Source: Epithemia pelagica (lineage: Eukaryota > Protista > Bacillariophyta). Taken from it: a stretch of DNA of 64,000 nucleotides. Of the stretch, positions 6,115 through 63,663 are shown piece after piece. Every line of letters begins with the position of its first letter. Position 1 is the first letter of the stretch. Position numbers and translations under genes: made by a program. The DNA is taken from contig OX337239.1 in the NCBI GenBank assembly GCA_946965045.2, positions 1 through 64,000 on the forward strand, in the 5' to 3' direction. Below the pieces are notes generated by a model. That model saw only the letters and a list, made by a program, of their open reading frames with translations, was not told where the DNA came from and made no database searches.

Positions 6115-6421
6115 AAGCATGTCATTGTTCCATGTCCATGGAATTTTGCAAAGCCACACCGATAGGTCAGCCCAGCGAGTGAAACGCGACCATGTTGGGA
6201 ATGATTACACTTATCCTCACAGTATGTGGTAATACTCACAGTGAATAGTATAGTGTGACGATTTCTGTACACAAAGGCGACCGATCGGTTATCCGTGGAT
6301 CTATTTCCAGTTGAACTCTCGTTCATATGACAGCAGAGGTTTCATAAAAATCCAAAGAAGAAGCAACAAGTACAGGTATTTGCATTCACAGCAAAACGAA
6401 GAGAAGGAGACTGCAAACAGA

Positions 6422-7378
6422 ATGGCTGACAATCCAGAGGACCAACCGGAGGATGAATCGGGAGATGAATCGGAGGAAGAAGAATCGGAGGAAGAAGATT
6501 TTTATGTTCGGGAACGTAGACGACGACGAGAAATGCGGGCGATCAACGACAGGAACTTGGAAGTGAATGATCGGCCTTGTTTCAGGGACGCTGGGAGGAT
6601 CTTTTTTGATTACGATAATGAAGAAGAAGATGTACCACAAGTCATAGAACAACTCAGAGAAGAGATGCGTGTCGGTCATGAAATCCAGACTGAATTCAAA
6701 CGGTTGGTGGACGAAATGCTTAGAGGTGAGAAACTCTGTCCATACTGTGTTATCCTTGGTCGTCCCACACCACATCACCAGTGCAATCATGGAAATACTA
6801 CAGTGGTAACACGTGCGGCATATCTCGATTATTCAGTTATCTGGCAGCAGAATTTTTTGATGCGTTGTAACTTATGTCACCGCCACAGGCATCCAACATT
6901 TCATTGTCAGGTGTGTAGGGAATGTTTCCGAATTCCCGAACGCTCAATACCTTTTGGGATTCCACAACCAGATTTGGATTCATGCAGTGTCTGTGTGGAA
7001 TCTGAGAACAAGCACTTCGTGTGGCAGTTCTGTATGCTCATACGCCATATTGTGGCGCGTACTTTTCAAATAACATCATTTTACGATGGTGTGAACTTTC
7101 CCCGTCAAATCACCTGGCCAATGTTTACTATTGTCCGCAGCTTTTGGCTTGAGGAATTGCGATCCCGTTTCTATTTTGATGATAACGATTGTGCCCCATA
7201 CGATTATGCCCGAGCATCTGATAAAACATGGGCAGTATGGTTGCTTTCGTTGCCTCATTCTACGGCTGGTTTTCGCAACTACATGCCACTCTTTGTCAGG
7301 TGCTTCCGTAATTGTCTCGAAAGAATGGCTGAGACGGCGGAGTTGGAACGTGGAAATATGGATGGTAATGATCATTGA
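6422..7378 (+). CDS. Hypothetical Cys/His-rich (putative Zn-binding) protein with acidic N-terminus; paralog of 7440-8567
   Basis: ATG at 6422 inside ORF 6311-7378; CPYC, CxxC pairs, NKHFVWQFC and WAVWLLS...NYMPLFVRCF. Confidence 0.7.
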   Translation: MADNPEDQPEDESGDESEEEESEEEDFYVRERRRRREMRAINDRNLEVNDRPCFRDAGRIFFDYDNEEEDVPQVIEQLREEMRVGHEIQTEFKRLVDEMLRGEKLCPYCVILGRPTPHHQCNHGNTTVVTRAAYLDYSVIWQQNFLMRCNLCHRHRHPTFHCQVCRECFRIPERSIPFGIPQPDLDSCSVCVESENKHFVWQFCMLIRHIVARTFQITSFYDGVNFPRQITWPMFTIVRSFWLEELRSRFYFDDNDCAPYDYARASDKTWAVWLLSLPHSTAGFRNYMPLFVRCFRNCLERMAETAELERGNMDGNDH

Positions 7379-7439
7379 CATATATTATAAATCTTGTTAT
7401 CTGTTCCCAGTTTGCCTTTCGATGAAGTCGAGAGTTTGT

Positions 7440-8567
7440 TTAATACAATGGTTTCGATGAAGACATCAAGGCTGTGTAACAATGACGGAAGAACGGCATG
7501 TAATTGTAGTATCGACCGAAAGACATGGAGACAAGCCATTTAGACCAGGAGTCTTGGTCAAGAACATGACAAAATGGAGATGTGTACTGAGAAGACTCCA
7601 TCGGATCTCGCAGTTCGTTGTACATCAACTCTGTTGCGTTTTTGATAATATCCTGTGCATGTTTGGGAATCGTGCCTGGTCCTTTGCAATTGGGCTTCAA
7701 TTGTGAGTACACCAACGCCCGTCCAGCAATATGACAGAATCGCCAGACGAAGTACTTGTTGCAAGAGTTCCAACAACCATGCGAGAAGACGCATTCTGAA
7801 TAAGAATTGCATGGCCTTAAGCAAAACTTACACACCAATGGAACCTTGTTTATGTCTGATTCTTCGCGTGTGATATTCATCGAATCATGGAAATACAGGG
7901 CTTCGGTGCAACAACGTTCATTCCCACCTGAATCACATCCGTTCATGGGCACTCCACAACCATAACAACAATCGGCACATGAGAGAGATTTACCGAAGCG
8001 ATGCCAACATTTTCCTGTAAGTCTACGATCTGTTGAAAGGTTGTCGGTTACAAAACACCAAGGACAGACTGGCTCTGGGGGAACATCATTGGATCCATAG
8101 ATTTTATTGACAAGCTCAGTGAACCGAATAACTTCGAGATGCAGCTTATCTCGGTTTGCTCTTGGTTTACACATTGGAGGAGAGTCATGTAATAGCAAGA
8201 TTGGAATAGTAGATGGATCGGCAACCTTGAGCTTCTTCTTATATGGGTTTGGGATCAACTGATACGATGGGCGCTTGATTGGTGGAAGTTTCTTCTCCTC
8301 TTCTTCCTTGGTATCAAGCTTAGAAGACGGAAGTGGATGACATTTGATTATTGATTTGGACGCAGGCGGTGGCTTCTTGTCATGTTCACCGTCGCAAGTT
8401 TTCAGGGTTGGAGAGTGCGTTTTGACCATGGGGGTCTCTATTTCCTCTAGCTCGTATGGGTTGATCATCATTTCTTCATTAGATGGAGGTATCTTTGTGA
8501 CTGGAAAGTTTGGTTTGACCACCAAGGGTGGAACTGTTTTCTTCCTCGATTTGTATGGGTTGATCAT
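7440..8567 (-). CDS. Hypothetical Cys-rich protein with three NPY motifs; paralog of 6422-7378
   Basis: CPWC, CxxC pairs, NKYFVWRFC and WSKWLVS...NYMPFFRHCY match the neighbouring convergent gene. Confidence 0.7.
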   Translation of the reverse strand: MINPYKSRKKTVPPLVVKPNFPVTKIPPSNEEMMINPYELEEIETPMVKTHSPTLKTCDGEHDKKPPPASKSIIKCHPLPSSKLDTKEEEEKKLPPIKRPSYQLIPNPYKKKLKVADPSTIPILLLHDSPPMCKPRANRDKLHLEVIRFTELVNKIYGSNDVPPEPVCPWCFVTDNLSTDRRLTGKCWHRFGKSLSCADCCYGCGVPMNGCDSGGNERCCTEALYFHDSMNITREESDINKVPLVCKFCLRPCNSYSECVFSHGCWNSCNKYFVWRFCHIAGRALVYSQLKPNCKGPGTIPKHAQDIIKNATELMYNELRDPMESSQYTSPFCHVLDQDSWSKWLVSMSFGRYYNYMPFFRHCYTALMSSSKPLY

Positions 8568-8762
8568 TGTTTGAAGAGGAGTAGAATAGCCTTACTGACT
8601 GAAGACTGAGGATGACTTTTGGAAAACGATGGAAAGTATCTACTATTTCATCCAATTTGTGTGTGACACTCTGAGTTGAATTGGTCGGCTCGCGTACGGT
8701 TGGGGGGGAGATTAGGAGGGGAGTGCTGGTATGTGACAACCCCCCATAGAGGCAAATTATGA

Positions 8763-11700
8763 TCATGACGTCGAATTGCTAACGGATTGTTTCAATCTTT
8801 CTTTCATTTCATTACAGCGTTTCTCGAGATTGTCACGGGCACTTTCATTGAATTCGGAAGCCCATTCTTTGATGTTGCGTATGGCCCAGACATTGTCACT
8901 AAAGTTTCTCAAATTACGACTGTCTTCTTGGAGTAAATCTTTTTCAAGTGAAGAATGGAAATATGTTGGGATAGAATCACGGTCTTGAATCATTTCTGGG
9001 TTCTCATCCACTACACCAACAACCTCAACAATATTCCGGAGTGGAACCATGACAATTTCAGCTATTCGATGTAGGTCAAAACGCTTACGCCATTTTTGAA
9101 AGAGAATGGATGATTTCTCGATATCAGCTGTACTCCGTACATATGTTGTTCGGAGAAGGACATGGGTCATCTCGGGTGAAGTTGAAGGTTGACATACCGG
9201 TGATGGTTGCATTTGTATGTGGTCTGTTCGAGTAATGGGTATTTGAATGAAGCATATCGTTTGACATAGGATGGTATCAAATTCTCCGAGAGGTTGGTTG
9301 TATACCTCATCAAGAGGTTTCCTTTTTTTCTTTGGAACTTTAGCCATCACCCAATCTCTCCATGGCCCCTCGCTTTGATAATTCGGATGAGCCCGTATAT
9401 TTCCTATCCTGGGGTCTTCGAACTTAAGTTCTGTGCTCCCGAACAATTCCAGTGTGGTTGAAGTCTCATTTGTTGGATCATCACTCATCCCGTCTATATG
9501 ATGAAAAAAGCGTTTGTAATGTAATCGAAAGAAGTGATTACAAAACTGTGGCAATGTCATGTCATGATTTGTTTTGGAATGGAATTCGATATTCACTGAT
9601 ACCACATCCTCCTCGTGTGGTGCTGCTGTCAATCGCCTGTGTACACTACTCGTCTGGTTTCGGTTTGATCCGTCTTGTTCTTTTCTGGTCGTGCCTGGAA
9701 CTTGAATCGACATACCCAATGGAGACGGAAGATCCTTGTCTATTTCATCTGATGACTGGTCTTGATTATCACCAGAAGTATGTACGTTTGTGTGAGGTAC
9801 TGGAATCAAACATTTTTCTCTGGTCATGGATACTACTATGACCGTTCCACGGCTATTCGAGGTTGATGTGGTAGGGAGTTGGTTTTGGGATCCCTTTTTT
9901 CTCCTTATTTCATAAGGCGACTTCCCTTCCTGGAGAAAGGTGACATGATCTTCTTCAAGACCTGTTGCTTCCTGCAGCATTTCCAAGCTTTGCATCCACC
10001 AGATATTTTCTGCAAGTTGCGACTCAAAAATTCCTTTTCCACGTTTCTGTACCGTTTTTGCATTCAATTTCACAATTTCCTTATGATTACTTTCCTCTGA
10101 CTCCACATCAAGCAGTCGTGCTGGTCCAAAATTCTGAATCTGTTGTATAATGTGTATGAGATTGTGGAATTTTGGTATCATCCACCCGTTGGACATCAAT
10201 TTGCCTTTTTTATCGAGCCTGGGTGCATATCTCCTGATGCCATCCATCAAAATCCGCACTGATTCGAGAGACTTGGATGCTGTTGTTTGTCCTTCTTGTG
10301 AGTCTGGGTCTGTTTCCCAGAATGTATCCATACGAATCCAGCTGTTGAAACACAAAAGAGTCTCGAATAGATGCAGGAAGTCTATGTATGGTTCCCGCTC
10401 ATCAACATCCCAGATAGACCTGTAAGCAACTGGGTCATCATCAAAAACAGTTTCAGCTGTGATATCAATGTCAACACTATCATCATCATCAAGACGTGTA
10501 CGTTCGTACTCTTCATCTGGTGGAGTATCATCCTCATTGTCAGCAATAGGTTCACTTGTCTCTTGCACTTGATCCAAGTCCGCTTGACATGTCTTGTTGG
10601 TGGTTTTGGATGTTTGCTTTGCTTGTCGTTTTTTCCATTCCGCAACCACCTTGTTCCATTTCTTTGCCATATTCTTCGCGAATATAAGGCGACCTCTGGC
10701 AGTGGCACATAGAGCTGCTGAAGCAAACATGATCCCAACCCACTCATTGGCAGTTACTTTTGACAGGTTACTGATCCCGGTCGAGAATGATGTTCCGGGA
10801 TATCCAAGTTTCGATGAATACGAGAATACAGTCTGTCTACTTGCCCGAAAGATTGAATTGTAGACATAATCAAACATGGCCCGTTCAGTTTTTGTCATCA
10901 ACGTGAAAAAGTCAATCATGATGTATCTCATTATCCCAGATTTCAATGTATGAAGAACATCACAACTACTGGCCGAGAAAATCCCATGTTCAGAATTGGT
11001 TCCTTCACCCAGGTAAACCTTGGAAAAACAAAGATCGACTGCATATTGTCCCATGTCATGCAATTGGGTTTTTGCAGCTGACACAAGGGTATTAACCCCT
11101 CCATCTCTGCTATTTTCTTGACTTACTTGCGATGTGCTCAAACAGGTAGGAACAGTCAAAGTCGAAAATGTATCATTGTCTCTCTCTTGGTAATCAACAT
11201 CCTGTTCAGTCAGTTTTTCTCGATTTTCATTAAGACCCAATGCATTCAAGCACATTTTGTATGTACTTGCAGCATTAATATAAGAACATTCATGCCATGG
11301 GTATCTGCTATCCCTTGGTTTAATGTTGCAACACCATGATAGTCTTCCAACACTTGGATGATGCGAGGCATACCGACCTGCAAGGTTATCCTGAGACTTC
11401 CCGTCTCCTTTGACAACAATCATTGGCAATATCAAACGGACAACTTTGATAATCCCATGGAGACGTAGTTTCATCCATAAACCTTCCTGTTTTTGGATAC
11501 TGACAAGACCTTCGAGGATCTTAGTCAATTGAGCATGATAATTTCGGCAAGGAGTCCCTTTATCGAGGATATGTTTTGCCGCTGATGATTTTCTTTCCAT
11601 GTCTGTAATAGTCCCAAGGATGATCTGTCGCCTTGCTTTCCTCATTTGTGTTTCCGTTAGAAAAGATGGCACCATTACAACAGGCTCCGATGTATATCTT

Positions 11701-12620
11701 CCATCCCCTGTTGCATGTGTTTTGTCCATATAACAGACAAGACCAACCACGAAGGCATCTGGATCATCTCTATATTTTTCCACTGTTTTCCGAAATACTT
11801 CTCCGTCTTGTATATTTTGGATATGCTTGTTTGGAACATATGGACGATACGGATCGTCATCATCGAGGATCGTATTTTCTTTCTTGGTTGCATCGGGATC
11901 TTGTAATACACGCTGTAGTTGACTGATCAAATCAAATACTGGTGTTGTTATTGATTTCTCACTCTCTGGTACAACCACACCCTGTTTTTGGGTGAATTCC
12001 ATTGGTACCGGGAAAAATTTGGCCTTGGGATAATTGAAACCTTTGGAAGAAAACTTTTCGATGAACGTTTTCCTCTTTGAATGGTTGTCCAGGAAGAACC
12101 CAGGACCGCATCTTGAGTATGTGTCACTCGACCATGCCAGGATCGAATTGTACAAATATTTGGGGCAACCAGCTTTCCGAAGTAACATCATAAGTGAGAC
12201 CAAGGCTGCATCGTGTTTATGAAGTTTCAATTGCTTCCCATCTCTATCGAGGAACGCAGGAAAATCAACCGGGCACTCCTTGCTGTTGCGCAGAATAATA
12301 TTATCTGTATCACCAGGTACATAGTATGCTTTTGGTGGGTCAGCATGCGGAATAGTGGTTTCATCGTCCATGATATCAATATTCATTGGATCAGCATTCA
12401 TATTACTGGCACAATCATTGTTGTCATCGCCAACATTTGGCCATTTCCTTTGGGTGTTCATTTTCAATTCACAAACTGTTTCGTGACGGCTGATTCCTCT
12501 TGCATCGAAACGTGATTGACAGAAACGACACACTTGAAAGGATATGAAGGACTCCTCTTGTTGGCTTGTATTTGAGCATCTCTTTCGCGACTTCTTTTTT
12601 ACTTTACGACGCTGGCCCAT
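8763..12620 (-). CDS. Plavaka-like (CACTA/CMC-related) transposase, 1285 aa
   Basis: N-terminal CRFC..H..C finger; YMDKTH...SEPV, RNYHAQL, VKGDGKSQD..AGRY..CC, and PKFHNLIHIIQQIQNFGP...ESEESNHKEIVK, a motif series I associate with Plavaka transposases. Confidence 0.72.
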   Translation of the reverse strand: MGQRRKVKKKSRKRCSNTSQQEESFISFQVCRFCQSRFDARGISRHETVCELKMNTQRKWPNVGDDNNDCASNMNADPMNIDIMDDETTIPHADPPKAYYVPGDTDNIILRNSKECPVDFPAFLDRDGKQLKLHKHDAALVSLMMLLRKAGCPKYLYNSILAWSSDTYSRCGPGFFLDNHSKRKTFIEKFSSKGFNYPKAKFFPVPMEFTQKQGVVVPESEKSITTPVFDLISQLQRVLQDPDATKKENTILDDDDPYRPYVPNKHIQNIQDGEVFRKTVEKYRDDPDAFVVGLVCYMDKTHATGDGRYTSEPVVMVPSFLTETQMRKARRQIILGTITDMERKSSAAKHILDKGTPCRNYHAQLTKILEGLVSIQKQEGLWMKLRLHGIIKVVRLILPMIVVKGDGKSQDNLAGRYASHHPSVGRLSWCCNIKPRDSRYPWHECSYINAASTYKMCLNALGLNENREKLTEQDVDYQERDNDTFSTLTVPTCLSTSQVSQENSRDGGVNTLVSAAKTQLHDMGQYAVDLCFSKVYLGEGTNSEHGIFSASSCDVLHTLKSGIMRYIMIDFFTLMTKTERAMFDYVYNSIFRASRQTVFSYSSKLGYPGTSFSTGISNLSKVTANEWVGIMFASAALCATARGRLIFAKNMAKKWNKVVAEWKKRQAKQTSKTTNKTCQADLDQVQETSEPIADNEDDTPPDEEYERTRLDDDDSVDIDITAETVFDDDPVAYRSIWDVDEREPYIDFLHLFETLLCFNSWIRMDTFWETDPDSQEGQTTASKSLESVRILMDGIRRYAPRLDKKGKLMSNGWMIPKFHNLIHIIQQIQNFGPARLLDVESEESNHKEIVKLNAKTVQKRGKGIFESQLAENIWWMQSLEMLQEATGLEEDHVTFLQEGKSPYEIRRKKGSQNQLPTTSTSNSRGTVIVVSMTREKCLIPVPHTNVHTSGDNQDQSSDEIDKDLPSPLGMSIQVPGTTRKEQDGSNRNQTSSVHRRLTAAPHEEDVVSVNIEFHSKTNHDMTLPQFCNHFFRLHYKRFFHHIDGMSDDPTNETSTTLELFGSTELKFEDPRIGNIRAHPNYQSEGPWRDWVMAKVPKKKRKPLDEVYNQPLGEFDTILCQTICFIQIPITRTDHIQMQPSPVCQPSTSPEMTHVLLRTTYVRSTADIEKSSILFQKWRKRFDLHRIAEIVMVPLRNIVEVVGVVDENPEMIQDRDSIPTYFHSSLEKDLLQEDSRNLRNFSDNVWAIRNIKEWASEFNESARDNLEKRCNEMKERLKQSVSNSTS

Positions 12621-15666: not shown

Positions 15667-15978
15667 GTGCTTTCTTATCGATAATTAAACCGCCATAAAC
15701 TGGCGTACCGTTCCTTCCTTAGATGCAAGGGACTGTTTTCTTGCAACAAGGAGTCGGTTGTCAGTTGCTGAGACACAGACTCCATGTTGATTTAGATGCC
15801 GCTGCATGGACCAAAGACTTTCTCCGAATGATTTCTTGCATATGCCGCATCCCATACCAAAGGGTGTCACAATGGTAGCATCTAAACATGACAAGCCAAT
15901 GCCCTGATCGGAACGGATCTTCTTCACAGGCCGTCTCCGGGATGGAGATGGCGTTCCAGGCCCATTGTTGGTAGCCAT
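15667..15978 (-). pseudogene. N-terminal fragment of a YR-RecQ family gene (family B)
   Basis: MATNNGPGTPSPSRRRP...VTPFGMGCGICKKSFGESLWSMQRHLNQHG is clearly homologous to the start of ORF 16466-20260; truncated next to the TTAGGG at 15661. Confidence 0.85.
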
Positions 15979-16100
15979 TGCTGGTTTCCTCGTGTGCATG
16001 GAACAGAGGAAGAGACATAACCAGCCGACTCTCAAGCAAAAGCAAGGATGGGCCTCTTTGCAAGAGTCATAATTCATGAAACAACAATGACCTTTTGTTG

Positions 16101-16471
16101 GGCCAATTGAGGTTTTCAGGTGAAGATGTTGGGCCTATTGAGGTTTTCAGGTGAAAATGTTTGGCGCGAAGGGGCACGCAGGCAAGCTTTTCGCGCCAAA
16201 AGAACGGGGGAACAACTAAGAGTGCGGTAATGGTTGGTAATGAATGAAATTCATGACTCATATTGAATATGAGTGCTTAGAAATTAGACTTGAGCGGGGC
16301 ATAGACATTCTGTGCTCATCTGCACAAGGGGCAGTGCTCTTTTGCAACAAAAGGCATATATATCAGTGCTCATATGCACAGATACTATAGCCCCTTGTGC
16401 TCATATGCACACGTTCAAATCCTACGGTGTCTAGTACTAAAGACACCCAAAAAAGGCAAATATCCTTAGGG
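16101..16471 (+). mobile_element. Family B terminus, copy 1 (GCTCATMTGCA iterons, CTACGG, hairpin GGTGTCT/AGACACC, CCTTAGGG)
   Basis: Near-identical to 22421-22761; identity ends at CCTTAGGG. Confidence 0.82.
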
Positions 16472-19400
16472 ACAATTTGACAACGAATGAGACTGGTACC
16501 CTGGTCTCTCATGATAATCGAGACACTTGTAGCAAATCCTGCCTTTGTAATGGTTAGTCAAGAAATCACTGAACCAACAGTCCCTTCGAAAATGGTCTCC
16601 CCCACAATTGAAACAACCCTTCGTCAAACAGGCATCACCTTGGCATTCTCTCCGACCACACACAAGACATCGTTCCTTCAAAGTCATTAAGACAAGCATA
16701 GCATCATTTACTTGCGTAGTACAAATCTCTTCCTTTTGTTTGGCTTGGCTTCCAACTACTTTTACAGGGATCATTTTTTGCCTTCCAATACATACATCAC
16801 ATACGTTGCACTGTTCGTACGTCGAGCCAAATTTGCCAGCCAAAGATACAACCCGACACTTCCCTCTCTCAGTATCCCAGTCCACAAGACCTTTTATGGT
16901 TCCAATTTGCATGTAATCTTGTTCGTTACTGGTATCAATAACACCAAGCTCTCTCAACCGATGGAAGTTCATCATATCCTCCTTCTCCATTGCCGCTTGT
17001 CGTGTTGATGATAATTTGTTTGCAAATATCACAAAGGATGAAGTCCCAGTACGTTGTTTGGGACGAAGTCTTCCCAGTGCTTGAACCACAGACATCAAGG
17101 AAAACAAATGGCCAACCACGACCACACAATGGCACTTTGGATTCTCGTTGCCCACCAATGCCACTGTTGAAGAAACTAGAATTGATATGGCTGAAGCCGA
17201 CCATCTCTTGGCAATATCACGTTGCTTGCTCGTTGTTGTCTCCGATGTTACGAACTCCACGGGACCAAGGGACATTTCTTCCAAACTTGCAACAACATCC
17301 ATCCCAAGCTGCTTAGAAGCAACAATGACATGAATCCCATGTCCCAATCGAGCAAAAGAGTTCATGGTGGATTGAATAAAATCTTTGAATTTGTAACGAA
17401 TAGCGACATCAACCACTACCGAGAACCGAAAACCAGATGGGAAGGAACCCAAAACCCTGTCGGAGTGCGAGATTGTCATGTCATCCAAGGTCCCCTTAGA
17501 TAAGGCCAAATATTTCATTAATGGGGGAAGAAATCTCCGTGGCAAAGAACCACTCAAGGTCATAATGGGCACTTCATATTTTGCCAACCGAGGCAAACAT
17601 TCCAATCGTGTACGAAACCCAATTTCTGAGTAAATAGTGTGAATCTCATCCACAATGATCCTTCCCAGCTTTCCCGCCGTCACCCACTCTTTTAGAATGA
17701 ACGAGTGATTTCGTTCCAACACCCAAATCGCATCCAAGCTCATGAAGACGACATCGGGAAGGTTCTTCATGTCAGAAATGACATCTGGTAATTCACCCAA
17801 TGAGAAATCAGATGCTGTCAAAGTCACTGATCTGACATCAACTTTAGTCTGTTTCGCTGTAGATATCATACTCTCGTCATGATATCCCGCCAGGAATTTA
17901 TAGGGAACAATGACTAGTGTTGTCTGTTGTTTGGTTCCATACAACCTCACCCCGGTTGTTGGCAAAATCCATGACATTGATTTACCCCCTCCACACGGCA
18001 AGCCAAAGTGACCATGTCTCTCATATTCCGAGCAAGTGTAGTGCAACATGTCCCGCTGCTGGTCGCAAGTGTAATTGGCAGCAGGCCCAAATAGTTTATG
18101 TAATGTGAGTAGTATCTGTTCGTCACTGAGTCCCTTCGCAATGACTGTCTCTTTCTGAACCAATTTTTCTCCCAAAGCCTTGTGGTATATCATGAACAAC
18201 TCCTCTTTCGTGTTTCCGGATAGAGATCCATAATGATCTCTATGGGTCCAATAACTATGACCCGACTGCTCTGCGACCATCTGAGTTGTATGCTGGTTAT
18301 GTATTGCTGTCTCATCCACCTGGGGAAAAAGTACATTGGACACAGATGTCCACAAATGCCTGATTTGTGTACAGTCCGGGCGATCCTCAAACCCAAAGAT
18401 GGTTGCCACAGCATCACCCATGTAGAATGCCCGATTATTTCTCACAGGAACAAGGCAACCAAGAGATTCATGGCAAAGTTCACATAGCACTCGAAAGACC
18501 ATGTATGCTCGACTCAAGGTCATGCAAAGTTTGTGCTCAATCAAATTTTTACCTTTGTGGTGAACACTGAACGCTTTTTCACTGTGTGAGTAGTAATACA
18601 CACAGCCTCCATGCCACCGCACGTCAGAAAACAGGCTACGAGAAATTTCAGTGTATCGCATGGACCCCAAACCTGTTCCATGAAATGCCAATTCCAAATA
18701 GGAGGCAAGGACATCAATGTCGCAGAGATCATAGTCGTCCTGAAGAACAATATCCTCTTGGGAGTAATTATTGTGACCCGATGCCAAAGTCATTGTTGTC
18801 TTGCCCATAGAACTCCAACACACGAACAGTGGATATCGTCGATTCAGTAGATTCACCCAACGATTACCCTTGATCACCTTGCAAAGTGAAGCAACCAACT
18901 TGTCAAAGATGATCGGAATGACGTTCGACCATTTTTGAAACTTGAACATAAAACCATCAACAAGTATATCGTAGTTGTCTTGAATGGACACTTTCCGTGA
19001 AGACGGTGTGAGCGACTCTCTCTCCCGCATACGCCGAATCGTACTTGCCAAAAAATTGACTGTGATGGAGTTTTGAACATTTTCCACCAGCCGAGAAGCT
19101 TTCTCATGGTAGCCCCGTCCCATGAAGTATATCATTGAGCAAATACTGGCCCGAAGCATGGCCAAAATGGCTGACAGCATTGTCGCAATGTAGGAGGGAC
19201 TCCAAACAGAAAGTGTCTCTGAACCTTCTTGCCCCCGGACAACTCTCCCCGCGCAGTAGGTCATGACTGTGGTATGATGCTGAACAGAATCCACTGTTTC
19301 TAAACACAGCTTTGCCAGTAAAGAGGGAATATCTCTAGTGAGTGGCAGAAGTTTGTGGTTGCTTTGACACAGGAACGAGAGCAATTTCTTGAACTCGGGG

Positions 19401-20260
19401 AGAAGTCTTTTGGGGTACGCAGTGAAGGTGAAAGTAGAAATCGCATTGGGAGTTCTTGCTCCATCAAAGACCAACAGCCTTGATCGGTAATTTGCTGGAA
19501 CCATCTGGACATGGAGGGCAGCCTGTGCTGTGAGCCAGTTTTCTCCTTGATGGTACAACAAATCAAAGAGTGGTTGATTGTCGATGATGTGTTTCAAGTT
19601 GATGGAGTCATATAAGAAATGCACTCGTTCCTTGAATGACCTTCCCTTGGGCCTGGATGGGTAAGGTTCGTCTTGGGCCAAGGGATGGAAAAGGGGTACG
19701 AAACACCCCATCATATCGGGGAGTACATGAAGAGTTGCTTGTAGTTGTGTGCTTGTTTTGAGTGAAGGGGCTTCTTGACAGGAATACTTGATCTGTAATG
19801 CCTTGAGGGAAATCATACGGCCACAGGTACTGATTTGTAGTTCCTCTTCTGTAGGGGAGGGAGCACCGCAGGTACGACCCGAGGACAAATGTCTGTACAC
19901 ATTTTGAAGTTTCAAGCTCCCAACAAGACAATGACATGAATAGCCCTTGACCTTTTCCCCCGTCATATATTCAGAGACACTTGAAATGTCTTGCATAACA
20001 CTTTGAGGGAGGGTCATTTGATGTTCTATCAGTGACTGGCTTTCAGAACGTGAGACAGACACACCATGGCCATTAAGGTGCCTTTGCATGGACCATAGAC
20101 TGGTTCCGAACGGTTTCCCACATAGGCGACACCCCATACCAAAGGGGGTCACTAGCGTGACATCGACAGCCTGTAGTTTGTTCTCTTCCTTTTTTTTCTT
20201 CGTTGGTCTCCTCCTTGATGGAGAAGGAGTCCCTGGCCCATTATTAGAGGGGGAAGCCAT
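16466..20260 (-). CDS. Zn finger-tyrosine recombinase-RecQ helicase-Zn knuckle fusion protein (family C), 1264 aa, C-terminus clipped by a junction
   Basis: CRLC..H..H finger; YR-like MRYTEI, QIRHLW and SGHSYWTHRDHY; helicase PCGGGKS, VPYKFL, VDEIH, LSGS and QALGRLRP; RQC CRV..CNVCDVC; CxxC knuckles. The stop codon is the TAA of the junction CCCTAA. Confidence 0.88.
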   Translation of the reverse strand: MASPSNNGPGTPSPSRRRPTKKKKEENKLQAVDVTLVTPFGMGCRLCGKPFGTSLWSMQRHLNGHGVSVSRSESQSLIEHQMTLPQSVMQDISSVSEYMTGEKVKGYSCHCLVGSLKLQNVYRHLSSGRTCGAPSPTEEELQISTCGRMISLKALQIKYSCQEAPSLKTSTQLQATLHVLPDMMGCFVPLFHPLAQDEPYPSRPKGRSFKERVHFLYDSINLKHIIDNQPLFDLLYHQGENWLTAQAALHVQMVPANYRSRLLVFDGARTPNAISTFTFTAYPKRLLPEFKKLLSFLCQSNHKLLPLTRDIPSLLAKLCLETVDSVQHHTTVMTYCAGRVVRGQEGSETLSVWSPSYIATMLSAILAMLRASICSMIYFMGRGYHEKASRLVENVQNSITVNFLASTIRRMRERESLTPSSRKVSIQDNYDILVDGFMFKFQKWSNVIPIIFDKLVASLCKVIKGNRWVNLLNRRYPLFVCWSSMGKTTMTLASGHNNYSQEDIVLQDDYDLCDIDVLASYLELAFHGTGLGSMRYTEISRSLFSDVRWHGGCVYYYSHSEKAFSVHHKGKNLIEHKLCMTLSRAYMVFRVLCELCHESLGCLVPVRNNRAFYMGDAVATIFGFEDRPDCTQIRHLWTSVSNVLFPQVDETAIHNQHTTQMVAEQSGHSYWTHRDHYGSLSGNTKEELFMIYHKALGEKLVQKETVIAKGLSDEQILLTLHKLFGPAANYTCDQQRDMLHYTCSEYERHGHFGLPCGGGKSMSWILPTTGVRLYGTKQQTTLVIVPYKFLAGYHDESMISTAKQTKVDVRSVTLTASDFSLGELPDVISDMKNLPDVVFMSLDAIWVLERNHSFILKEWVTAGKLGRIIVDEIHTIYSEIGFRTRLECLPRLAKYEVPIMTLSGSLPRRFLPPLMKYLALSKGTLDDMTISHSDRVLGSFPSGFRFSVVVDVAIRYKFKDFIQSTMNSFARLGHGIHVIVASKQLGMDVVASLEEMSLGPVEFVTSETTTSKQRDIAKRWSASAISILVSSTVALVGNENPKCHCVVVVGHLFSLMSVVQALGRLRPKQRTGTSSFVIFANKLSSTRQAAMEKEDMMNFHRLRELGVIDTSNEQDYMQIGTIKGLVDWDTERGKCRVVSLAGKFGSTYEQCNVCDVCIGRQKMIPVKVVGSQAKQKEEICTTQVNDAMLVLMTLKERCLVCGRRECQGDACLTKGCFNCGGDHFRRDCWFSDFLTNHYKGRICYKCLDYHERPGYQSHSLSNCP

Positions 20261-20724
20261 TGTCGATAGAGGTTTTGCTGAGAGTGTTCAAGAGACATCT
20301 TTCATCGTTCATCAAAGAAAGGGAGTGATGACCCTTTGCAGAATTGCATTGGGCCCAATTTACTGAACGAATGATGGGTAGGTACAAAGACCTAGAGGCA
20401 TAAACTAGGAATGGTCAAAATGGGATTTTGATGAGACCTAGTGATGGGTGGAATGAGATTTTTCTGTGAAATGCAAGCGTCATTTGGCGGGAAAAAAGAT
20501 TGTACAAAAAAGTTAGTTGGTCATTTGTGTACAAATATATGTCACTCATACACACATATTAGCTGGTTTGTTGTAACAAGGAAATTTTGTACAGCAAACC
20601 AGAGGAAATTCAATCTTACGTTGATTCTTCTATGTAGAGTAGGGCAAGACAAAAACCTAACTGGCAGAGCTCTGAAAAGTATTTGGCCAGTATAGAGCAT
20701 ATTGAATATGACGGCTTTTCGGGA

Positions 20725-20911
20725 GTGGTCAAAGGGGCATAGACAAGGCCACTGCTCAATCGCAACAAAAGCATAACAAATTGCAGCTCATCCGCAACAA
20801 ATCCTTGCTCATATGCAACAGGCACTATAGGATTTTGTGCTCATATGCACACGTTCAAATTCTACGGTCTCTAGTACTAAAAGCTCCCAAAAAAGTGAAA
20901 TATCCTTAGGG
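20725..20911 (+). mobile_element. Family C terminus, copy 1 (four GCTCA-N2-YGCA iterons, CTACGG-N36-CCTTAGGG), upstream of the YR-RecQ gene
   Basis: Duplicated at 27385-27564; identity ends at CCTTAGGG. Confidence 0.82.
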
Positions 20912-21869: not shown

Positions 21870-21967
21870 TGGGAGCTCATATGCAAAATATGCAGCTCAA
21901 GTGCAACCTGTAGAAAGCTACGGGCTCTGGTACAAAAACTAGAATCTAGACCTAAATTTCCTTAGGG
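21870..21967 (+). mobile_element. Family D terminus (two GCTCA iterons, CTACGG-N36-CCTTAGGG)
   Basis: Same architecture and spacing as B and C despite different intervening sequence. Confidence 0.72.
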
Positions 21968-22395
21968 TCATTGTTACTAATGACTCTTTGCAGAATTGCA
22001 TTGGGTCTGATTAACACACCAACGAATGGTCATTTTTTGTTGGGCCTATTGAGATTTTCAGGTGAATGACCTTTACTTCCGAATGATTTTTGGCGCGAAG
22101 GGCCACGCCGGCGAGCTTTTCCCGCCAGACGAATGGGAAACAACTAAGAGTGCGGTAATGGCTAGTAGTCAAAGAAAACAAGGAGCCATACTCAATATGA
22201 GTGCTAGGAACTAAATCTAGGGGGGGCATAGGCAAGCTATCTGCTCATCCGCAACAATACTTAACAAAATGGCTGCTCATCCGCAACAAAATGCTCATAT
22301 GCAACAATCCACTGTGGAAATGGTTGCTCATATGCAACAGTAGATTTCTACGGGTCCTGGTACAAGTCAGTAAAAAAAAGTGCATTATCCTTAGG
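21968..22395 (+). mobile_element. Family E terminal fragment (B-related; four iterons, CTACGG-N35-CCTTAGG)
   Basis: Shares TTTGGCGCGAAGGG...AACAACTAAGAGTGCGGTAATGG with B; has its own terminal sequence. Confidence 0.72.
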
Positions 22396-22423
22396 CCTAC
22401 GGACAGACACTTTCTCCTTAGGG
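22391..22423 (+). mobile_element. Minimal 33-bp family A terminal remnant between an E terminus and a B fragment
   Basis: TAGGCCTACGGACAGACACTTTCTCCTTAGGG has one mismatch to 2911-2942. Confidence 0.8.
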
Positions 22424-22761
22424 CCAATTGAGGTTTTCAGTTGAAGATGTTTGGCGCGAAGGGGCACGCAGGCAAGCTTTTCGCGCCAAAAGAACGGGGG
22501 AACAACTAAGAGTGCGGTAATGGTTGGTAATGAATGAAATTCATGACTCATATTGAATATGAGTGCTTAGAAATTAGACTTGAGCGGGGCATAGACATTC
22601 TGTGCTCATCTGCACAACGGGCAGTGCTCTTTTGCAACAAAAGGCATATATATCAGTGCTCATATGCACAGATACTATAGCCCCTAGTGCTCATATGCAC
22701 ACGTTCAAATCCTACGGTGTCTAGTACTAAAGACACCCAAAAAAGGCAAATATCCTTAGGG
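22421..22761 (+). mobile_element. Family B terminus, copy 2
   Basis: Near-identical to the B copy ending at 16471. Confidence 0.85.
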
Positions 22762-23274
22762 TAACCTGCTGCAGGGCAGCGGCATGGTAAATATTGAATT
22801 CTCAACTTGAATTATTGGGGTCCAGTTGGTTTCTTGCTGCATGGTTTCTCTTTGGGGCCTTGGCATGAAGCATCCACAATTCAGCTTGAAGAAAGTCTTG
22901 GCAATGACTTTGTCACTAGCGCAACAACCAGCAACGTGCTTCTCGCACAAAAGCTTCACATGAAACATCTTGTCACAGTCACTACAGAAATACTTGATTC
23001 TTGTATCATTTGACTCATGAATGAAACAATCAAACGGTTGGTTGTTGGCATTCTCCACAAGAGTGTGTATTTTGTTACCAAGATGTCTCCCAGGAAAGCG
23101 AAAGGACACCCCATGAATTTTGGAGCAGGTCTTGGCGTGGCGGGCAAGACACTTCATGTTTGCTCGGAAACCACCACCACAGAGCTTACAGACCAAGCCA
23201 CAGGGTGTGGCAAAGTCCACAAGCCCCAAGTAATCGTCAAACTCCATGGTGGCTGTTGTCGTTCCTATGGTCAA
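22756..23274 (-). pseudogene. Divergent N-terminal fragment of a YR-RecQ family gene (family F)
   Basis: FATPCGLVCKLCG..ARH, YFCSDC..CEKHVAGC and KLNCGCFM align with VTPFGMGCRLCG..QRH, YSCHC..RHLSSGRTC and ISTCGRMI. The stop is the junction CCCTAA. Confidence 0.7.
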
Positions 23275-23324
23275 AATAGGTTTGGGATGTATGACCCTTT
23301 GCAGCCAAAAAAGAGGCCCTAAAG

Positions 23325-23884
23325 AGGGTCATTCACCTCAAAAACTGAAAAGGCCCTAACACCAGAGATCATTCACCTCAAAATCTTTGAGCGACAAGAA
23401 GGAATATGGTTTACTATGGAGAGTTAATGTAGGTTTGCAAATCGACCTTCTTGTGGTCGAAATCGACCTTTTTGTGGTCGCACTAAAATTTCGCACGCAA
23501 CAATACAGTGATTCAAAATTGACCTTTTTGTGGTCGCGCATGTGATTCTACAGAATGAACTTAGTGCGCACGACAAAAAGGTCGATTTCTAGCAAAACCC
23601 TTAGGGTCATTCACCTCAAAAACTGAAAAGGCCCTAACACCAGAGATCATTCACCTCAAAATCTTTGAGCGACAAGAAGGAATATGGTTTACTATGGAGA
23701 GTTAATGTAGGTTTGCAAATCGACCTTCTTGTGGTCGAAATCGACCTTTTTGTGGTCGCACTAAAATTTCGCACGCAACAATACAGTGATTCAAAATTGA
23801 CCTTTTTGTGGTCGCGCATGTGATTCTACAGAATGAACTTAGTGCGCACGACAAAAAGGTCGATTTCTAGCAAAACCCTTAGGG
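23325..23884 (+). mobile_element. Family F terminus, tandemly duplicated (278-bp period), GACCTT(T/C)TTGTGGTCG iterons, each copy ending AAAACCCTTAGGG
   Basis: 23325-23606 and 23603-23884 are essentially identical; a third copy ends at 25851. Confidence 0.85.
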
Positions 23885-24700
23885 TCTTGGTCGATAGGGA
23901 TGGAGGAGTGAGGGATATGGGTGTACCAACTTGATGTCTCGGTCCTTCCAGTCAAGAATCAGTAGCAAATACAACAATCCAATAGGGTCTTGGTCGATAG
24001 AGATGGAAGAGGGAAGTATGGGGGCGCACCAACTTGGTGTCTCGGCCCTTCAACAGAACCACCAATCAAGATACAGCAATCCAATGGGGTCTTCTTGGTC
24101 GATGTAGATGAAGGAGGGATGGAGAGGGGTGCACCAACTTGGTATCTCAGCCCTTGTCCCAATCGGGAAGGAGTAGCAACACAGCAATCCAACAGGGTCT
24201 TGGTCGATAGAAATGGAGGGGTGAAGGAAATGGGTGCACCAACTTGGTGTCTTGGCCCTTGTTCCAATCGAGAAGGAGTAGCAACACAGCAATCCAACAG
24301 GGTCTTGGTTGATGGAAATGGAGGGGTGAAGGAAATGGGTGCACCAACTTGGTGTCTCGGCCCTTGTTCCAATTGAGAAGGGGTAGCAACACAGCAATCC
24401 AACAGGGTCTTGGTCGATGGAGATGGAGGGGTGAAGGAAGAGGGTGCACCAACTTGGTGTCTTTTGCCCTTTGTTCAATAGAATCCTCACCAATCCGACC
24501 GTTCAGATCGTTGAAAATGGTCTTCTGGGATAATAGGAGGGAAGAAGCAGCGGCAATCCAGCAATCCAACCAGTTTTGGTTGATGGAAATTGATGGGAGA
24601 ATGAAATGGGTGCACCAACTTGGTGTCTTCGCCCTTTTTCAAACAGAACCACCAATCCAGTCGTTCAGAGCGTTGAAAATTGTCTTGTGGGATGATAGGA
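23881..24700. repeat. About 105-bp tandem repeat, 6 copies plus degenerate ones (segment H)
   Basis: GGGTCTTGGT(C/T)GAT near 23881, 23984, 24086 (variant), 24194, 24299 and 24404, with GGTGCACCAACTTGGTGTC in most units. Confidence 0.9.
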
Positions 24701-24879
24701 GGGAAGAAATAGTTGCCAAACAGCGATCACATGGTTGGTTTTCATGGAAACAGAAGAAAATGATTAGTGGGCATATAGGAAAACGACAAAACGAACTCTC
24801 ACTGTTGTCTTGTCGACTTGGCTTACCTAGCACCTTTCCAATTTGAAAAAGGAAATGATTCTCTTTGTGTTTGCCTGTT

Positions 24880-25471: not shown

Positions 25472-25851
25472 CAAGTAATCGTCAAACTCCATGGTGGCTG
25501 TTGTCGTTCCTATGGTCAAAATAGGTTTGGGACGTATGACCCTTTGCAGCCAAAAAAGAGGCCCTAAAGAGGGTCATTCACCTCAAAAACTGAAAAGGCC
25601 CTAACACCAGAGATCATTCACCTCAAAATCTTTGAGCGACAAGAAGGAATATGGTTTACTATGGAGAGTTAATGTAGGTTTGCAAATCGACCTTCTTGTG
25701 GTCGAAATCGACCTTTTTGTGGTCGCACTAAAATTTCGCACGCAACAATACAGTGATTCAAAATTGACCTTTTTGTGGTCGCGCATGTGATTCTACAGAA
25801 TGAACTTAGTGCGCACGACAAAAAGGTCGATTTCTAGCAAAACCCTTAGGG
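25472..25851 (+). mobile_element. Family F terminal fragment, copy 3
   Basis: Matches 23227-23606 including the start of the family F ORF; ends AAAACCCTTAGGG. Confidence 0.85.
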
Positions 25852-26913
25852 ACTCCAAACAGAAAGTGTCTCTGAACCCTCTTGCCCCCGGACAACTCTC
25901 CCCGCGCAGTAGGTCATGACTGTGGTATGATGCTGAACAGAATCCACTGTTTCTAAACACAGCTTTGCCAGTAAAGAGGGAATATCTCTAGTTAGTGGCA
26001 GAAGTTTGTGGTTGCTTTGACACAGGAACGAGAGCAATTTCTTGAACTCGGGGAGAAGTCTTTTGGGGTACGCAGTGAAGGTGAAAGTAGAAATCGCATT
26101 GGGACTTCTTGCTCCATCAAAGACCAACAGCCTTGATCGGTAATTTGCTGGAACCATCTGGACATGGAGGGCAGCCTGTGCTGTGAGCCAGTTTTCTCCT
26201 TGATGGTACAACAAATCAAAGAGTGGTTGATTGTCGATGATGTGTTTTAAGCTGATGGAGTCATATAAGAAATGCACTCGTTCCTTGAATGACCTTCCCT
26301 TGGGCCTGGATGGGTAAGATTCGTCTTGGGCCAAGGGATGGAAAAGGGGTACGAAACAACCCATCATATCGGGGAGTACATGAAGAGTTGCTTGTAGTTG
26401 TGTGCTTGTTTTGAGTGAAGGGGCTTCTTGACAGGAATACTTGATCTGTAATGCCTTGAGGGAAATCATACGGCCACAGGTACTGATTTGTAGTTCCTCT
26501 TCTGTAGGGGGGGGAGCACCGCAGGTACGACCCGAGGACAAATGTCTGTACACATTTTGAAGTTTCAAGCTCCCAACAAGACAATGACATGAATAGCCCT
26601 TGACCTTTTCCCCCGTCATATATTCAGAGACACTTGAAATGTCTTGCATAACACCTTGAAGGAGGGTCATTTGATGTTTTATCAGTGTCTGGCTTTCAGA
26701 ACGTGAGACAGACACACCATGGCCATTAAGGTGCCTTTGCATGGACCATAGACTGGTTCCGAACGGTTTCCCACATAGGCGACATCCCATACCAAAGGGG
26801 GTCACTAGCGTGACATCGACAGCCTGTAGTTTGTCCTCTTCCTTTTTTTTCTTTGTTGGTCTCCTCCTTGATGGAGAAGGAGTCCCTGGCCCATTATTAG
26901 AGGGGGAAGCCAT
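25846..26913 (-). pseudogene. Second copy of the family C YR-RecQ gene, truncated after 355 aa
   Basis: Near-identical to 19197-20260; ends SVWSP-stop at the junction CCCTAA. Confidence 0.92.
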
Positions 26914-27384
26914 TGTCGATAGAGGTTTTGCTGAGAGTGTTCAAGAGACATCTTTCATCGTTCATCAAAGAAAGGGAGTGATGACCCTTTGCAGAATTGC
27001 ATTGGGCCCAATTTACTGGACGAATGATGGGTAGGTACAAAGACCTAGAGGCATAAACTAGGAATGGTCAAAATGGGATTTTGATGAGAACTAGTGATGG
27101 GTGAAATGAGATTTTTCTGTGAAATGCCAGCGTCATTTGGCGGGAAAAAAGATTGTACAAAAAATTTAGTTGGTCATTTGTGTACAAATATAGGTCACTT
27201 GTACACACATATTAGCTGGTTTGTTGTAACAAGGAAATTTTGTACAGCAAACCAAAGGAAATTCAATCTTACGTTGATTCTTCTATGTAGAGTAGGGCAA
27301 GACAAAAACCTAACTGGCAGAGCTCTGAAAAGTATTTGGCCAGTATAGAGCATATTGAATATGACTGCTTTTGGGGAGTGGTCA

Positions 27385-27747
27385 AAGGGGCATAGACAAG
27401 GCCACTGCTCAATCGCAACAAAAGCATAACAAATTGCAGCTCATCCGCAACAAATCCTTGCTCATATGCAACAGGCACTATAGGATTTTGTGCTCATATG
27501 CACACGTTCAAATTCTACGGTCTCTAGTACTAAAAGCTCCCAAAAAAGTGAAATATCCTTAGGGCATAGGTAAATTCCTGGCTCAATCGCAACGGGGGTT
27601 ATGAAAAATTGCAGCTCATCTGCAAAATGAGCATAACAAATTTGCTCATATGCAACAAAGCACTGTAGGATATTCTGCTCATATGCACACGTTCAAATCC
27701 TACGGTCTCTAGTACTAAAACATGCCAAAAAAGGGGAAAATACTTAG
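27385..27747 (+). mobile_element. Family C terminus copy 2 (to 27564), followed directly by a related C' terminus (27562-27747, ending ACTTAG)
   Basis: Two consecutive iteron-CTACGG-N36-(C/A)CTTAG modules. Confidence 0.8.
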
Positions 27748-28730
27748 TGTGATTGGTGTGTTGAACAATCAAATCAAAGTGGACACTCCAGAGTCAGGGA
27801 GAGGGTCAGGAATGAAGACATTGATGCGGAAAAGGCTGAATCCTATCTGGCAAGGCTTACAAGAGAATGCATTGTGTGCAAGGAGGCAGGATGCAATGGT
27901 GAAAGCTGTCTGCCCTTTGGAGCATGCTTCAACTGTGGTCAGCCAGGTCACCAGAGAGGACAGTGCTGAGTCAATTTCCAAACAGTCTTGAGCAACAAGG
28001 CCTGCTTTTACTGCTTTGATGTGTTCAGCGGGCGCGGCTACAAGCAACACCATCCCAGTGCATGTCCTTTACAACGAAGATTGAAGCGGCTGATGATCGA
28101 TGTATATGAGTCAAGGAAGACCAATGGACAATCCAGAGCAATGACTGATTTCATGTCCGAAGTAACATGCGACAGCCATTCGTTTCATGCTTTTCTGTGT
28201 CAGAGTGTTGAACAACGGATGGGCATGACAGTGACACAGACACCTCATGCAACCACAGCAGCCAGACCATCTGTGGCACGACCAGCTCTACCAAGGAATC
28301 CATATGCAAAGAAAGCATTCAATTAGATAGTATTAAGTTAGTAGTTACAATGTGTCGGGTTAAAGACCATCATCAAAAGGCCCATAGAAGAGTCATCTCA
28401 CTAAAAAATCTAATCACGTCTCACAAAAAAATATTAGGCCCAAAGAAGGGTCATTTCACACAAAAATCTGAACCAGTCACACTTGTAGTGACGGGAAATG
28501 AAACTAGTCGAGCTAGGACTAACTAATAAGCATGGGCATAGGTATGACTAGAATAGGGCTGTTCTAGTGGGCTGTTCTGCAGTGGGACAGCAGGCTGTTC
28601 TGCAGTGGGACAGGGCACTTCTGCAGTGGGACAGAGGGCGATTCTGCAGTGGGACAAGTGGGATGGGGGCTGTTCTGCAGTGGGACGCTAGAGTCTACGT
28701 AGGCCTACGGACAGGCACTTTCTCCTTAGG
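27747..28730 (+). mobile_element. Family A copy 2: 3' fragment of the helicase gene (premature stop 27967-27969) plus the A terminus
   Basis: Near-identical to about 1958-2941; ends CCTTAGG; innermost junction of the stack. Confidence 0.9.
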
Positions 28731-63631: not shown

Positions 63632-63663
63632 ACGAAAAATCGGAACGAATGGGTCTGATAAAC

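Follow-up and report, generated by a model that had tools for sequence, protein, structure and literature searches.

The chromosome end formed by the first 64,000 nucleotides of contig OX337239.1 of the diatom Epithemia pelagica (GenBank assembly GCA_946965045.2, forward strand; hereafter, the window) carries an element that we file as a telomere-linked helicase (TLH)-type element, the fungal TLH proteins having been compared by their published description only. The assignment is made because the parts of the protein come in the same order, and the region has the same layout, as in the TLHs described. The main open reading frame (ORF) of the element, at 16466–20260 on the minus strand, encodes 1264 amino acid residues (aa), and we conclude from residue conservation and structure modeling that aa 495–712 belong to the tyrosine recombinase/topoisomerase IB superfamily, with a complete predicted active site. 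This predicted domain lies directly before a RecQ-like helicase. The gene sits in a repeat unit with a fixed CCCTAA start, which is joined to CCC targets at its junctions; this unit and these targets are new here.

The Main ORF and Its Zinc Motifs

Translation of 16466–20260 on the minus strand, the strand of all the main-ORF features given below, yields the 1264-aa frame with no internal stop, as an initial annotation of the window had reported. The ORF lies about 16 kb inward of a terminal telomere array, (CCCTAA)n, at bp 1–562; the host telomere repeat is TTAGGG, and the window is a chromosome end. According to the ORF listing, Pfam, and alignment, the protein consists of zinc fingers, a helical middle, the tyrosine recombinase/topoisomerase IB-like domain, the RecQ-like helicase, and a Cys-rich tail. 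Pfam recognizes solely a DEAD/DEAH domain at aa 754–908 and Helicase_C at aa 977–1064, and the first 720 residues have no match in Pfam families or PDB sequences. The N-terminal zinc fingers claimed in the initial annotation were found. The first, of the C2H2 type, is formed by C44, C47, H61, and H65 (Cx2Cx13Hx3H; 20066–20131) and matches the published TLH pattern (bioRxiv 10.1101/2024.02.27.582403). The second, identified by alignment, is formed by C109, C111, H124, and C131 (CxCx12Hx6C; 19868–19936) and is close to that pattern but not identical; its C109, C111, and H124 are nearly invariant in the homologue alignment.

A Predicted Recombinase/Topoisomerase IB-like Domain

The domain, aa 495–712, is encoded at 18125–18778. 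A word-indexed search gave 13 full-length homologues at 26–35% identity, and a first conservation alignment was made of the 14 full-length family members, which show 26–35% identity. In the part before the helicase, residues G528, G530, G532, R535, E538, K562, R634, G667, H668, T672, and Y677, among others, are invariant in all 14. The motifs that house these residues are GxGxGxxRxxE, SxK, QxR(H), and GHSxxTHxxxY. When 1.84 billion cluster representatives were searched with a profile, 559 proteins were found at E ≤ 1e-3, 186 of them at E ≤ 1e-30. Deep conservation was counted over the best 150 of the 559 representatives plus the first homologues, a set with about 110–130 sequences per site and a mutual identity below 50%. 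R535 (codon at 18656–18658) is kept in 132/133 of these sequences, K562 (18575–18577) in 130/130, R634 (18359–18361) in 117/120, H668 (18257–18259) in 109/109, and Y677 (18230–18232) in 106/108. The R, the R of the RH box, the H of GH, and the Y that had been singled out in the initial annotation are thus 98–100% conserved.

R535 is the R of MRYTEI, and K562 is the K of HSEK. The R and GH...Y motifs lie where they had originally been placed (G667-H668...Y677 is at 18230–18262), whereas TQIRH, that is, T631-Q-I-R634-H635, is at 18356–18370, a few bases off the 18349–18366 first given. Similarly, the R, K, R, H, and Y of the proposed catalytic set R-K-HxxR-H/W-Y stand, but the His of HxxR does not, because the position of T631 varies. 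The conserved set is therefore R-K-R-H-Y and not the recombinase hexad. R-K-R-H-Y is the pentad of the type IB topoisomerases, to which the recombinase hexad adds the first His of HxxR. The predicted nucleophile of the pentad is Y677, and covalent 3′-phosphotyrosine chemistry would be expected of a domain with these residues.

An AlphaFold model of aa 495–712, built from 98 sequences, has a pLDDT of 88.3 and a pTM of 0.82. In the model, R535 is at the start of a helix, K562 is in the hairpin of strands 2 and 3, R634 is in a long helix, and H668 and Y677 are at both ends of the last short helices. Judged by known tyrosine recombinase structures, this placement is recombinase-like. When aa 495–712 were compared with the PDB by Foldseek, the top 47 matches were all Cre, XerH, XerA, bacterial or eukaryotic topoisomerase IB, phage or archaeal integrases, or Flp, the best of them with E 3.6e-3, probability 0.99, and a template modeling (TM) score of 0.39–0.40. 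Among viral models (BFVD), the top match is a DNA_BRE_C protein (E 7.3e-4, probability 1.00), and those next to it are mainly integrases. The fold predicted for the region before the helicase is, thus, the one that the initial annotation had called for, with AlphaFold and Foldseek giving almost only the recombinase/topoisomerase IB superfamily. Cre and Xer recombinases outscore topoisomerases in the fold searches. Alignment by hhalign to six bona fide recombinases (XerD, XerC, Cre, lambda Int, FimB, and FimE) gave E 3e-4 over 139 columns. It pairs R535, R634, H668, and Y677 with R148, R247, H270, and Y279 of XerD and, in the alignment with Cre, R535 and K562 with R173 and K201.

The region upstream of the domain, aa 190–494 (18779–19693), is conserved and mostly helical, as seen in the alignment and the structure model, and it is possibly the core-binding part of the recombinase module. 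The top 26 PDB fold matches of a two-domain model, aa 190–720, are all Cre, to which the model aligns over about 400–460 columns with a low TM-score. TelA is among the weak fold matches of the same model (probability 0.30).

The following points weigh against the assignment. At T631, where the HxxR box has its first His, the family shows L, T, R, I, or V and no conserved His. The hhalign probability is only 40%, and the structural scores are modest, with TM 0.39–0.40 and E of about 4e-3. No recombinase family, Phage_integrase included, was matched in Pfam by the 14 members at E up to 10, and no recombinase match was found in NCBIfam, PDB phmmer, or PDB profile searches. Membership of aa 495–712 in the superfamily is nevertheless our conclusion because fold, residue conservation, and residue placement agree, modest as the single scores are.

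The Helicase Part and Its Fusion to the Domain

The helicase core spans aa 721–1130 (16871–18100) and is of superfamily 2 (SF2). Its Walker A motif, GGGKS (aa 757–761), and its DExH motif, DEIH (aa 871–874), are invariant in the family. The Cys-rich C-terminal region, aa 1131–1264 (16469–16870), contains the RecQ zinc cysteines C1135, C1151, C1154, and C1157, also invariant, and, past this zinc subdomain, additional Cys clusters and a CX2CX4HX4C knuckle. A profile of aa 721–1264 finds RECQL5 as its best match in the PDB (E 2.6e-13, with the alignment running through the zinc-binding cysteines), followed by BLM, RecQ, and RECQ1. The RecQ-type helicase described in the initial annotation is, thus, present in its SF2 motifs, zinc cysteines, and knuckles. 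Neither an RQC winged helix nor HRDC has a Pfam match in the main ORF, where the zinc subdomain alone is recognized. The NCBIfam model recQ_fam scores 28–30 bits, far below its curated cut-off of 219.8. Since the NCBIfam RecQ models are matched so far below their thresholds, the helicase represents a divergent, RecQ-like branch.

The initial annotation had described the recombinase and the helicase as fused in one ORF. Among family proteins with at least 300 aa after the recombinase-like domain, and so sufficiently complete, the helicase is present in 64/64. The fusion is thus obligatory among the family's sequences and no peculiarity of one locus.

The Element Unit and Its Terminus

Comparison of the copies defines a common unit running from 20911 to 16468 of the window, about 4445 bp, made up of 650 bp upstream plus the ORF. 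The 5′ non-coding part occupies 20261–20911 on the minus strand. The upstream, centromere-side end of the unit is sharp and always starts with CCCTAAGGATATTT, here at 20898–20911, which is one C-strand telomere unit; the CCCTAA is inverted relative to the copy's own telomere. Seven copies of the main subtype have seven unrelated flanks. The 14-mer CCCTAAGGATATTT is likewise the start of a second subtype, with a protein of about 51% identity; another, third start has one base different. In the window and four further loci together there are 13 starts, each with exactly one CCCTAA in the same register and none with a second telomere unit before it; their flanks differ, duplicated copies excepted. 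The starts in the window, at 16471, 20911, 21967, 22761, and 27564, are all on the minus strand.

The terminal ~110 bp, for example, 20800–20911, are conserved between subtypes, and equivalent conserved ends are found at the starts 16471, 22761, and 27564. In this segment, two copies of TGCTCATATGCA, with the core CATATG, are spaced by 32 bp, a spacing shared by the copies of another direct repeat of 16 nt. These repeats are candidate protein-binding sites adjoining the crossover. No tRNA-like or known RNA features were found in the conserved terminus.

In complete terminal copies, a 178-bp satellite follows within 50 bp of the ORF and runs directly into the telomere. Between the 1307-aa gene of paralogous copies and the telomere, the satellite extends over 1.2 kb to more than 5 kb (13972–15207 of contig end L004; in L003 and L005 likewise downstream of the gene). 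It is missing from the window because the window copy is cut at its last 43 codons.

Junctions at CCC

The cut is itself informative. The main ORF is 43 aa shorter than the 1307-aa paralogues, and where these read ...TGTCCCT|TGAAG..., the window copy reads ...TGTCCCT|AAGGATATTTGCC..., the first letters of a subtype-B element. The main ORF lost 43 residues and gained its TAA stop, then, because the CCCTAA start of the type B element is joined to it at 16468–16471. With the 1307-aa paralogue as the reference, the 3′ end of the main ORF is one example of a CCC junction. In total, six independent junctions have an uninterrupted flank as a reference, and 6/6 references read CCC exactly where the CCC of the element lies. 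The target is CCCT in three cases and CCCA in three. Since CCC is found at 1.2% of positions (0.012 per position), chance alone would give 6/6 with a probability of about 3e-12.

The distal continuation of the six interrupted targets was searched for, in the window through the whole sequence up to the telomere, and none was found. The distal part of the target is gone, and in its place are the element, the 178-bp satellite, and the telomere. A simple-insertion model of the Crypton kind was rejected for this lack of a distal continuation.

Relatives and Their Genomic Setting

One homologue has relatives of more than 90% identity annotated in the diatom Fragilaria crotonensis, and the remaining relatives come from marine and freshwater metagenomes. 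The F. crotonensis fragments are the only named relatives; further alignment-based searches and cluster look-ups gave none. ENA assembly ERZ21939226 contains a protein 99% identical to the main ORF and others more than 90% identical, on at least 8 contigs. The copies examined in this assembly are all 1.4–16 kb from a contig end, with the 3′ end outward, and two of the five contig ends that bear them finish in (TTAGGG)n. The telomere linkage asserted in the initial annotation is, thus, seen both in the window and near five contig ends of one assembly.

Many relatives have an extra conserved module. It is either fused at the C-terminus (about 300 aa, in proteins P0100, P0101, P0104, P0154, P0242, and P0006) or encoded by an adjacent ORF, for example, at 8080–9024(+) of locus L011, 6694–7524(+) of L020, and 4369–7896(−) of L010. 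The module of P0101 matches the Tet-like 2OG-Fe(II) oxygenase family PF20515 at the Pfam threshold (E 4.6e-6, 27.2 bits), and that of P0100 matches Tet_JBP weakly (E 0.008). The window copies are without this TET/JBP-like module. TET/JBP genes are otherwise known in KDZ transposons, in some Helitrons (Chlamydomonas), and in DNA-1_cRei.

A family member also lies beside bacterial genes on a contig of a metagenome-assembled genome (locus L021; GCA_942491345.1, CALOAN010000017.1). A bacterial origin was rejected, as the contig is a chimera: its GC content switches from 46–51% to 64–74% at about 5.2 kb. The 5.2 kb of eukaryote-like DNA, which include the zinc-finger part of the family member, are joined to the bacterial genes at an IS4-type transposase gene. 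A cluster mate of the CALOAN010000017.1 protein is found beside a BTB gene on a contig of 48.6% GC.

Further Copies and Other Features of the Window

Besides the main copy, the window contains several partial ones. The type B element joined to the main ORF is represented by its 5′ part at 15691–16471(−), with the joint ...TGTCCCT|AAGG... and a zinc-finger fragment at 15709–15876. A second, 3′-truncated copy at 25848–27564(−) starts with CCCTAAGGATATTT at 27551–27564 and comprises the 5′ region and aa 1–355, about 97–98.5% identical. Two more element starts lie in 21954–22761(−): a type B start at 22748–22761, 98.5% identical to 16131–16471, and a diverged start at 21954–21967, CCCTAAGGAAATTT. 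An N-terminal family fragment is found at 22816–23208(−) and a C-terminal one at 27748–28068(+). The 3′ two-thirds of the truncated second copy are replaced by 284-bp and ~105-bp tandem repeats at 23227–24708, of which 23227–23606 recurs at 25472–25851.

A 5′-truncated paralogue at 565–2538(+), with helicase and Cys-rich tail only, is 32% identical to aa 677–1264 and points inward. It abuts the telomere and is capped by it directly (...CCCTAACCC|TTCTATGC). Its 3′ part is duplicated 27 kb inside, at 27747–28730(+), with 98.8% identity, and this duplicate and a diverged element start at 27750, CACTAAGTATTTTCC, meet head to head. The arrangement suggests that a chromosome end once lay here and was later built over.

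Between the element and the telomere there is a 1285-aa ORF at 8763–12620(−), with no Pfam match, which is also present in the matching contig end L002. Near it, two ORFs at 6311–7378 and 7440–8567 have weak mutual similarity. Farther inward, segments 48139–51877 and 52167–55940 form a tandem duplication of about 3.8 kb and 91% identity, each with ORFs of about 450–470 aa that have no Pfam match. A Copia-type retrotransposon at 57197–63828(−) has 165-bp long terminal repeats that are 100% identical (57197–57361 and 63664–63828) and ORFs at 57501–62000 (RVT_2) and 61985–63631; it is probably a recent insertion.

Proposed Mechanism and Alternatives

It is somewhat probable, in our judgment, that the locus is a TLH-type element whose recombinase–RecQ protein moves or copies "element, satellite, telomere" to other chromosome ends. 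The initial annotation had named the telomere-linked helicase as the mobilizing enzyme. Its domain call has held up, and the mobilizing role is plausible, with the junctions as circumstantial evidence for it. We propose the following course of events. The recombinase module would bind the conserved terminal ~110 bp of its own element and would cut at the CCC(T) of this end as well as at a CCC of a different chromosome end, so that a 3′-phosphotyrosine link forms. One strand would be exchanged, for which about 3 nt of pairing would be needed, with homology tested through the three C:G pairs. The fused 3′-5′ helicase would unwind or branch-migrate the joint, and replication or a second exchange would finish the event. 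In this way the cassette would be transferred or copied to the other chromosome end, possibly an eroded one. Our working analogy is Xer-mediated integration of the CTX phage, in which there is short homology beside the cleavage site and a one-strand exchange is completed by replication.

A number of observations count against a mobilizing role. Because the distal target continuation is absent, the junction events are chromosome-end replacements and not insertions. Neither circles nor excised forms of the element turned up, nor did a reciprocal product, a donor form, a de novo event, or a polymorphism between empty and filled ends within a single lineage. The 3–4 nt of microhomology at the joints are also typical of host end joining. 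Near-identical copies have 45 non-synonymous versus 21 synonymous variable codons and so give little sign of current purifying selection, a comparison that we regard as uninformative. Finally, the nine metagenomic contigs and six JGI loci that represent other subfamilies were free of telomere repeats and CCCTAA starts, a weak negative from short-read contigs; these loci are collinear copies from the same organisms and are therefore uninformative on element boundaries.

The same joints could have been made by host repair, through microhomology-mediated end joining or break-induced replication, with the recombinase-like domain nonetheless real. A broken or eroded end would have been joined to the uncapped, nearly eroded telomere end of another copy, and the protein would serve telomere maintenance, for example, by unwinding or nicking telomeric DNA in crisis, and not its own spread. 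Microhomology of 3–4 nt is indeed all that the joints share, the distal chromosome part is replaced in the events, and the telomere-adjacent paralogue, truncated and capped by repeats, shows that erosion and healing occur at the window end. Moreover, telomere crisis is reported to induce the tlh genes of fission yeast, and yeast deficient in telomerase is reported to amplify its Y′ elements (PMC1635262; PMC4522978; bioRxiv 10.1101/2024.02.27.582403). However, an eroding array should leave 0, 1, or 2+ units in several registers, whereas 13/13 starts keep one CCCTAA in the same register, and CCC is used in 6/6 informative targets. Diverged subtypes also keep the terminal ~110 bp in common, which is what a cis-acting site would show, and a conserved, always-fused cleavage–religation active site is left unexplained by host repair, which we hold to be unlikely, though worth keeping in view. 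Template-primed synthesis would account at once for the constant register and lone unit of the starts, the need for CCC, and the end replacement: a chromosome 3′ end, ...CCC, would pair with a template (antisense RNA or single-stranded DNA) ending in ...TTAGGG-3′ and be extended, as by telomerase or telomere-specific retroelements, and the recombinase domain would have another role. The CCHC knuckles, typical of single-stranded nucleic acid binders, would suit such a process. It is improbable all the same, given that the element encodes no polymerase or reverse transcriptase, that no matching transcript or end was observed, and that its orientation is opposite to that of known telomere-specific retroelements.

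Two further explanations concern the domain. It may be a type IB topoisomerase-like swivel or nickase that aids the helicase on telomeric or subtelomeric DNA, by relieving torsion or acting on G-rich structures, with no recombination; the element would then spread passively via ordinary subtelomeric homologous recombination. The conserved pentad R-K-R-H-Y without the recombinase-specific first His speaks for this, as do the topoisomerase IB structures among the fold matches and the known cooperation of RecQ helicases with topoisomerases. The known topoisomerase partner of RecQ helicases is Top3, a type IA enzyme. Because Cre and Xer recombinases have the better fold scores, and because passive homologous recombination yields no sharp boundaries with unrelated flanks at a fixed CCC, we consider such a helper quite unlikely. 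That an unrelated helical domain resembles recombinases through a chance pattern of motifs is a reading already disfavored and, in our view, very improbable. The lack of a Pfam or PDB sequence match and TM-scores below 0.5 are what it has in its favor. It is opposed by five residues conserved at 98–100% across the diverged deep set, by two structure libraries that return almost solely the recombinase/topoisomerase IB superfamily at the top, and by an hhalign alignment that sets these residues on true catalytic residues.

Implications

If the block before the helicase is a cleavage–religation domain, the protein would have a new architecture, a tyrosine recombinase-type domain with a RecQ-type helicase, among the few machineries of eukaryotic mobile elements, and it would be a candidate for an enzyme whose recognition core is very short, CCC within the telomere unit. 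The predictions are that Y677 is the nucleophile, that the site is CCCTAAGGATATTT plus ~100 bp, and that CCC is the sole requirement of the target. Junctions at one fixed telomere-like site suggest how TLH elements move between chromosome ends. With such a cleavage–religation domain, telomere location, spread, reverse-motif boundaries, and crisis amplification would join in one testable mechanism. It is tempting, although doubtful at this point, to go further and to see the fungal, choanoflagellate, and diatom TLH elements as one ancient mobile superfamily, in which a "TLH domain" of the recombinase/topoisomerase IB kind and RecQ would move a gene–satellite–telomere cassette by site-specific exchange at a C-strand telomere motif. 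Were that so, chromosome ends would be capped or re-capped by a recombinase, and Y′-like subtelomeres would have a plausible origin.

Comparison with Known Systems

The telomere resolvases TelK, TelA, and ResT belong to the same superfamily, act at chromosome ends, and do so without the canonical first His. They make hairpin ends at palindromic sites, whereas the ends here are ordinary (TTAGGG)n and no palindromic site was found. With Cre, XerC–XerD, the phage integrases, and the poxvirus-type and bacterial type IB topoisomerases, the domain shares the predicted fold and the order of R, K, R, H, and Y. It differs from them in an identity of about 10–16%, in its fusion to a helicase, and in its eukaryotic nuclear setting; like topoisomerase IB, it lacks the first His. 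Helitrons are alike in that a single large protein couples a DNA-cleaving enzyme of the covalent-tyrosine type to a helicase. The Helitron enzyme is an HUH Rep endonuclease, which forms a 5′-phosphotyrosine link, and its helicase is of the Pif1-type SF1. In contrast, the protein here combines a recombinase/topoisomerase IB fold with a RecQ-type SF2 helicase.

Like the present element, Cryptons are eukaryotic, lack a reverse transcriptase, and have an enzyme of the tyrosine recombinase type. The terminus of CryptonF-1_cRei is CACCG and its target CAYCG, so that 4–5 bp are common to terminus and target (PMC9977147), which resembles the meeting of the element's CCC(T) with a target CCC. However, Cryptons have no helicase and insert into and excise from internal sites, whereas here a chromosome end is replaced; in addition, the canonical His of HxxR and Pfam-detectable recombinase similarity are absent here. 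In the Crypton survey by Kojima and Jurka, the word "helicase" is absent (PMC3212892). The searchable literature, which is incomplete, yielded no description of a recombinase–helicase fusion in a eukaryotic element and no paper that connects a tyrosine recombinase with TLH genes or with a helicase fusion of any kind, or that identifies part of a TLH protein as a recombinase.

The closest likeness is to the TLH family itself, reported only from fungi and one choanoflagellate in the papers cited here; by our assignment, the host here is a diatom. Fungal and choanoflagellate TLH proteins have two C2H2 motifs, a "TLH domain" of about 250 aa directly before the helicase, and RecQ motifs, their function being unknown; some members have extra C-terminal zinc motifs (B. 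cinerea preprint; bioRxiv 10.1101/2024.02.27.582403). In M. oryzae, DNA unique to the chromosome gives way to the TLH region at the first or second C of CCTAACC..., a telomere motif in reverse complement that precedes the TLH gene; tandem repeats and then the telomere lie downstream of the gene, and the ends are variably truncated (PMC1635262). The layout here is the same, with a proximal boundary at a reverse-complement telomere motif, the gene towards the telomere, and tandem repeats between them. In both, the gene is multi-copy and telomere-adjacent (here, the telomere at 1–562 and window copies at 565, 16466, and 25848), and copies are truncated at chromosome ends. The TET/JBP-like dioxygenase domain of some relatives of the main ORF sets these apart from the TLHs. 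The order of two N-terminal zinc motifs, a conserved block before the helicase, and RecQ motifs is shared. The function of the "TLH domain" is unassigned in the cited papers, in which it counts as a motif specific to the family, and the block at the same position in the diatom protein is, by our prediction, tyrosine recombinase/topoisomerase IB-like.

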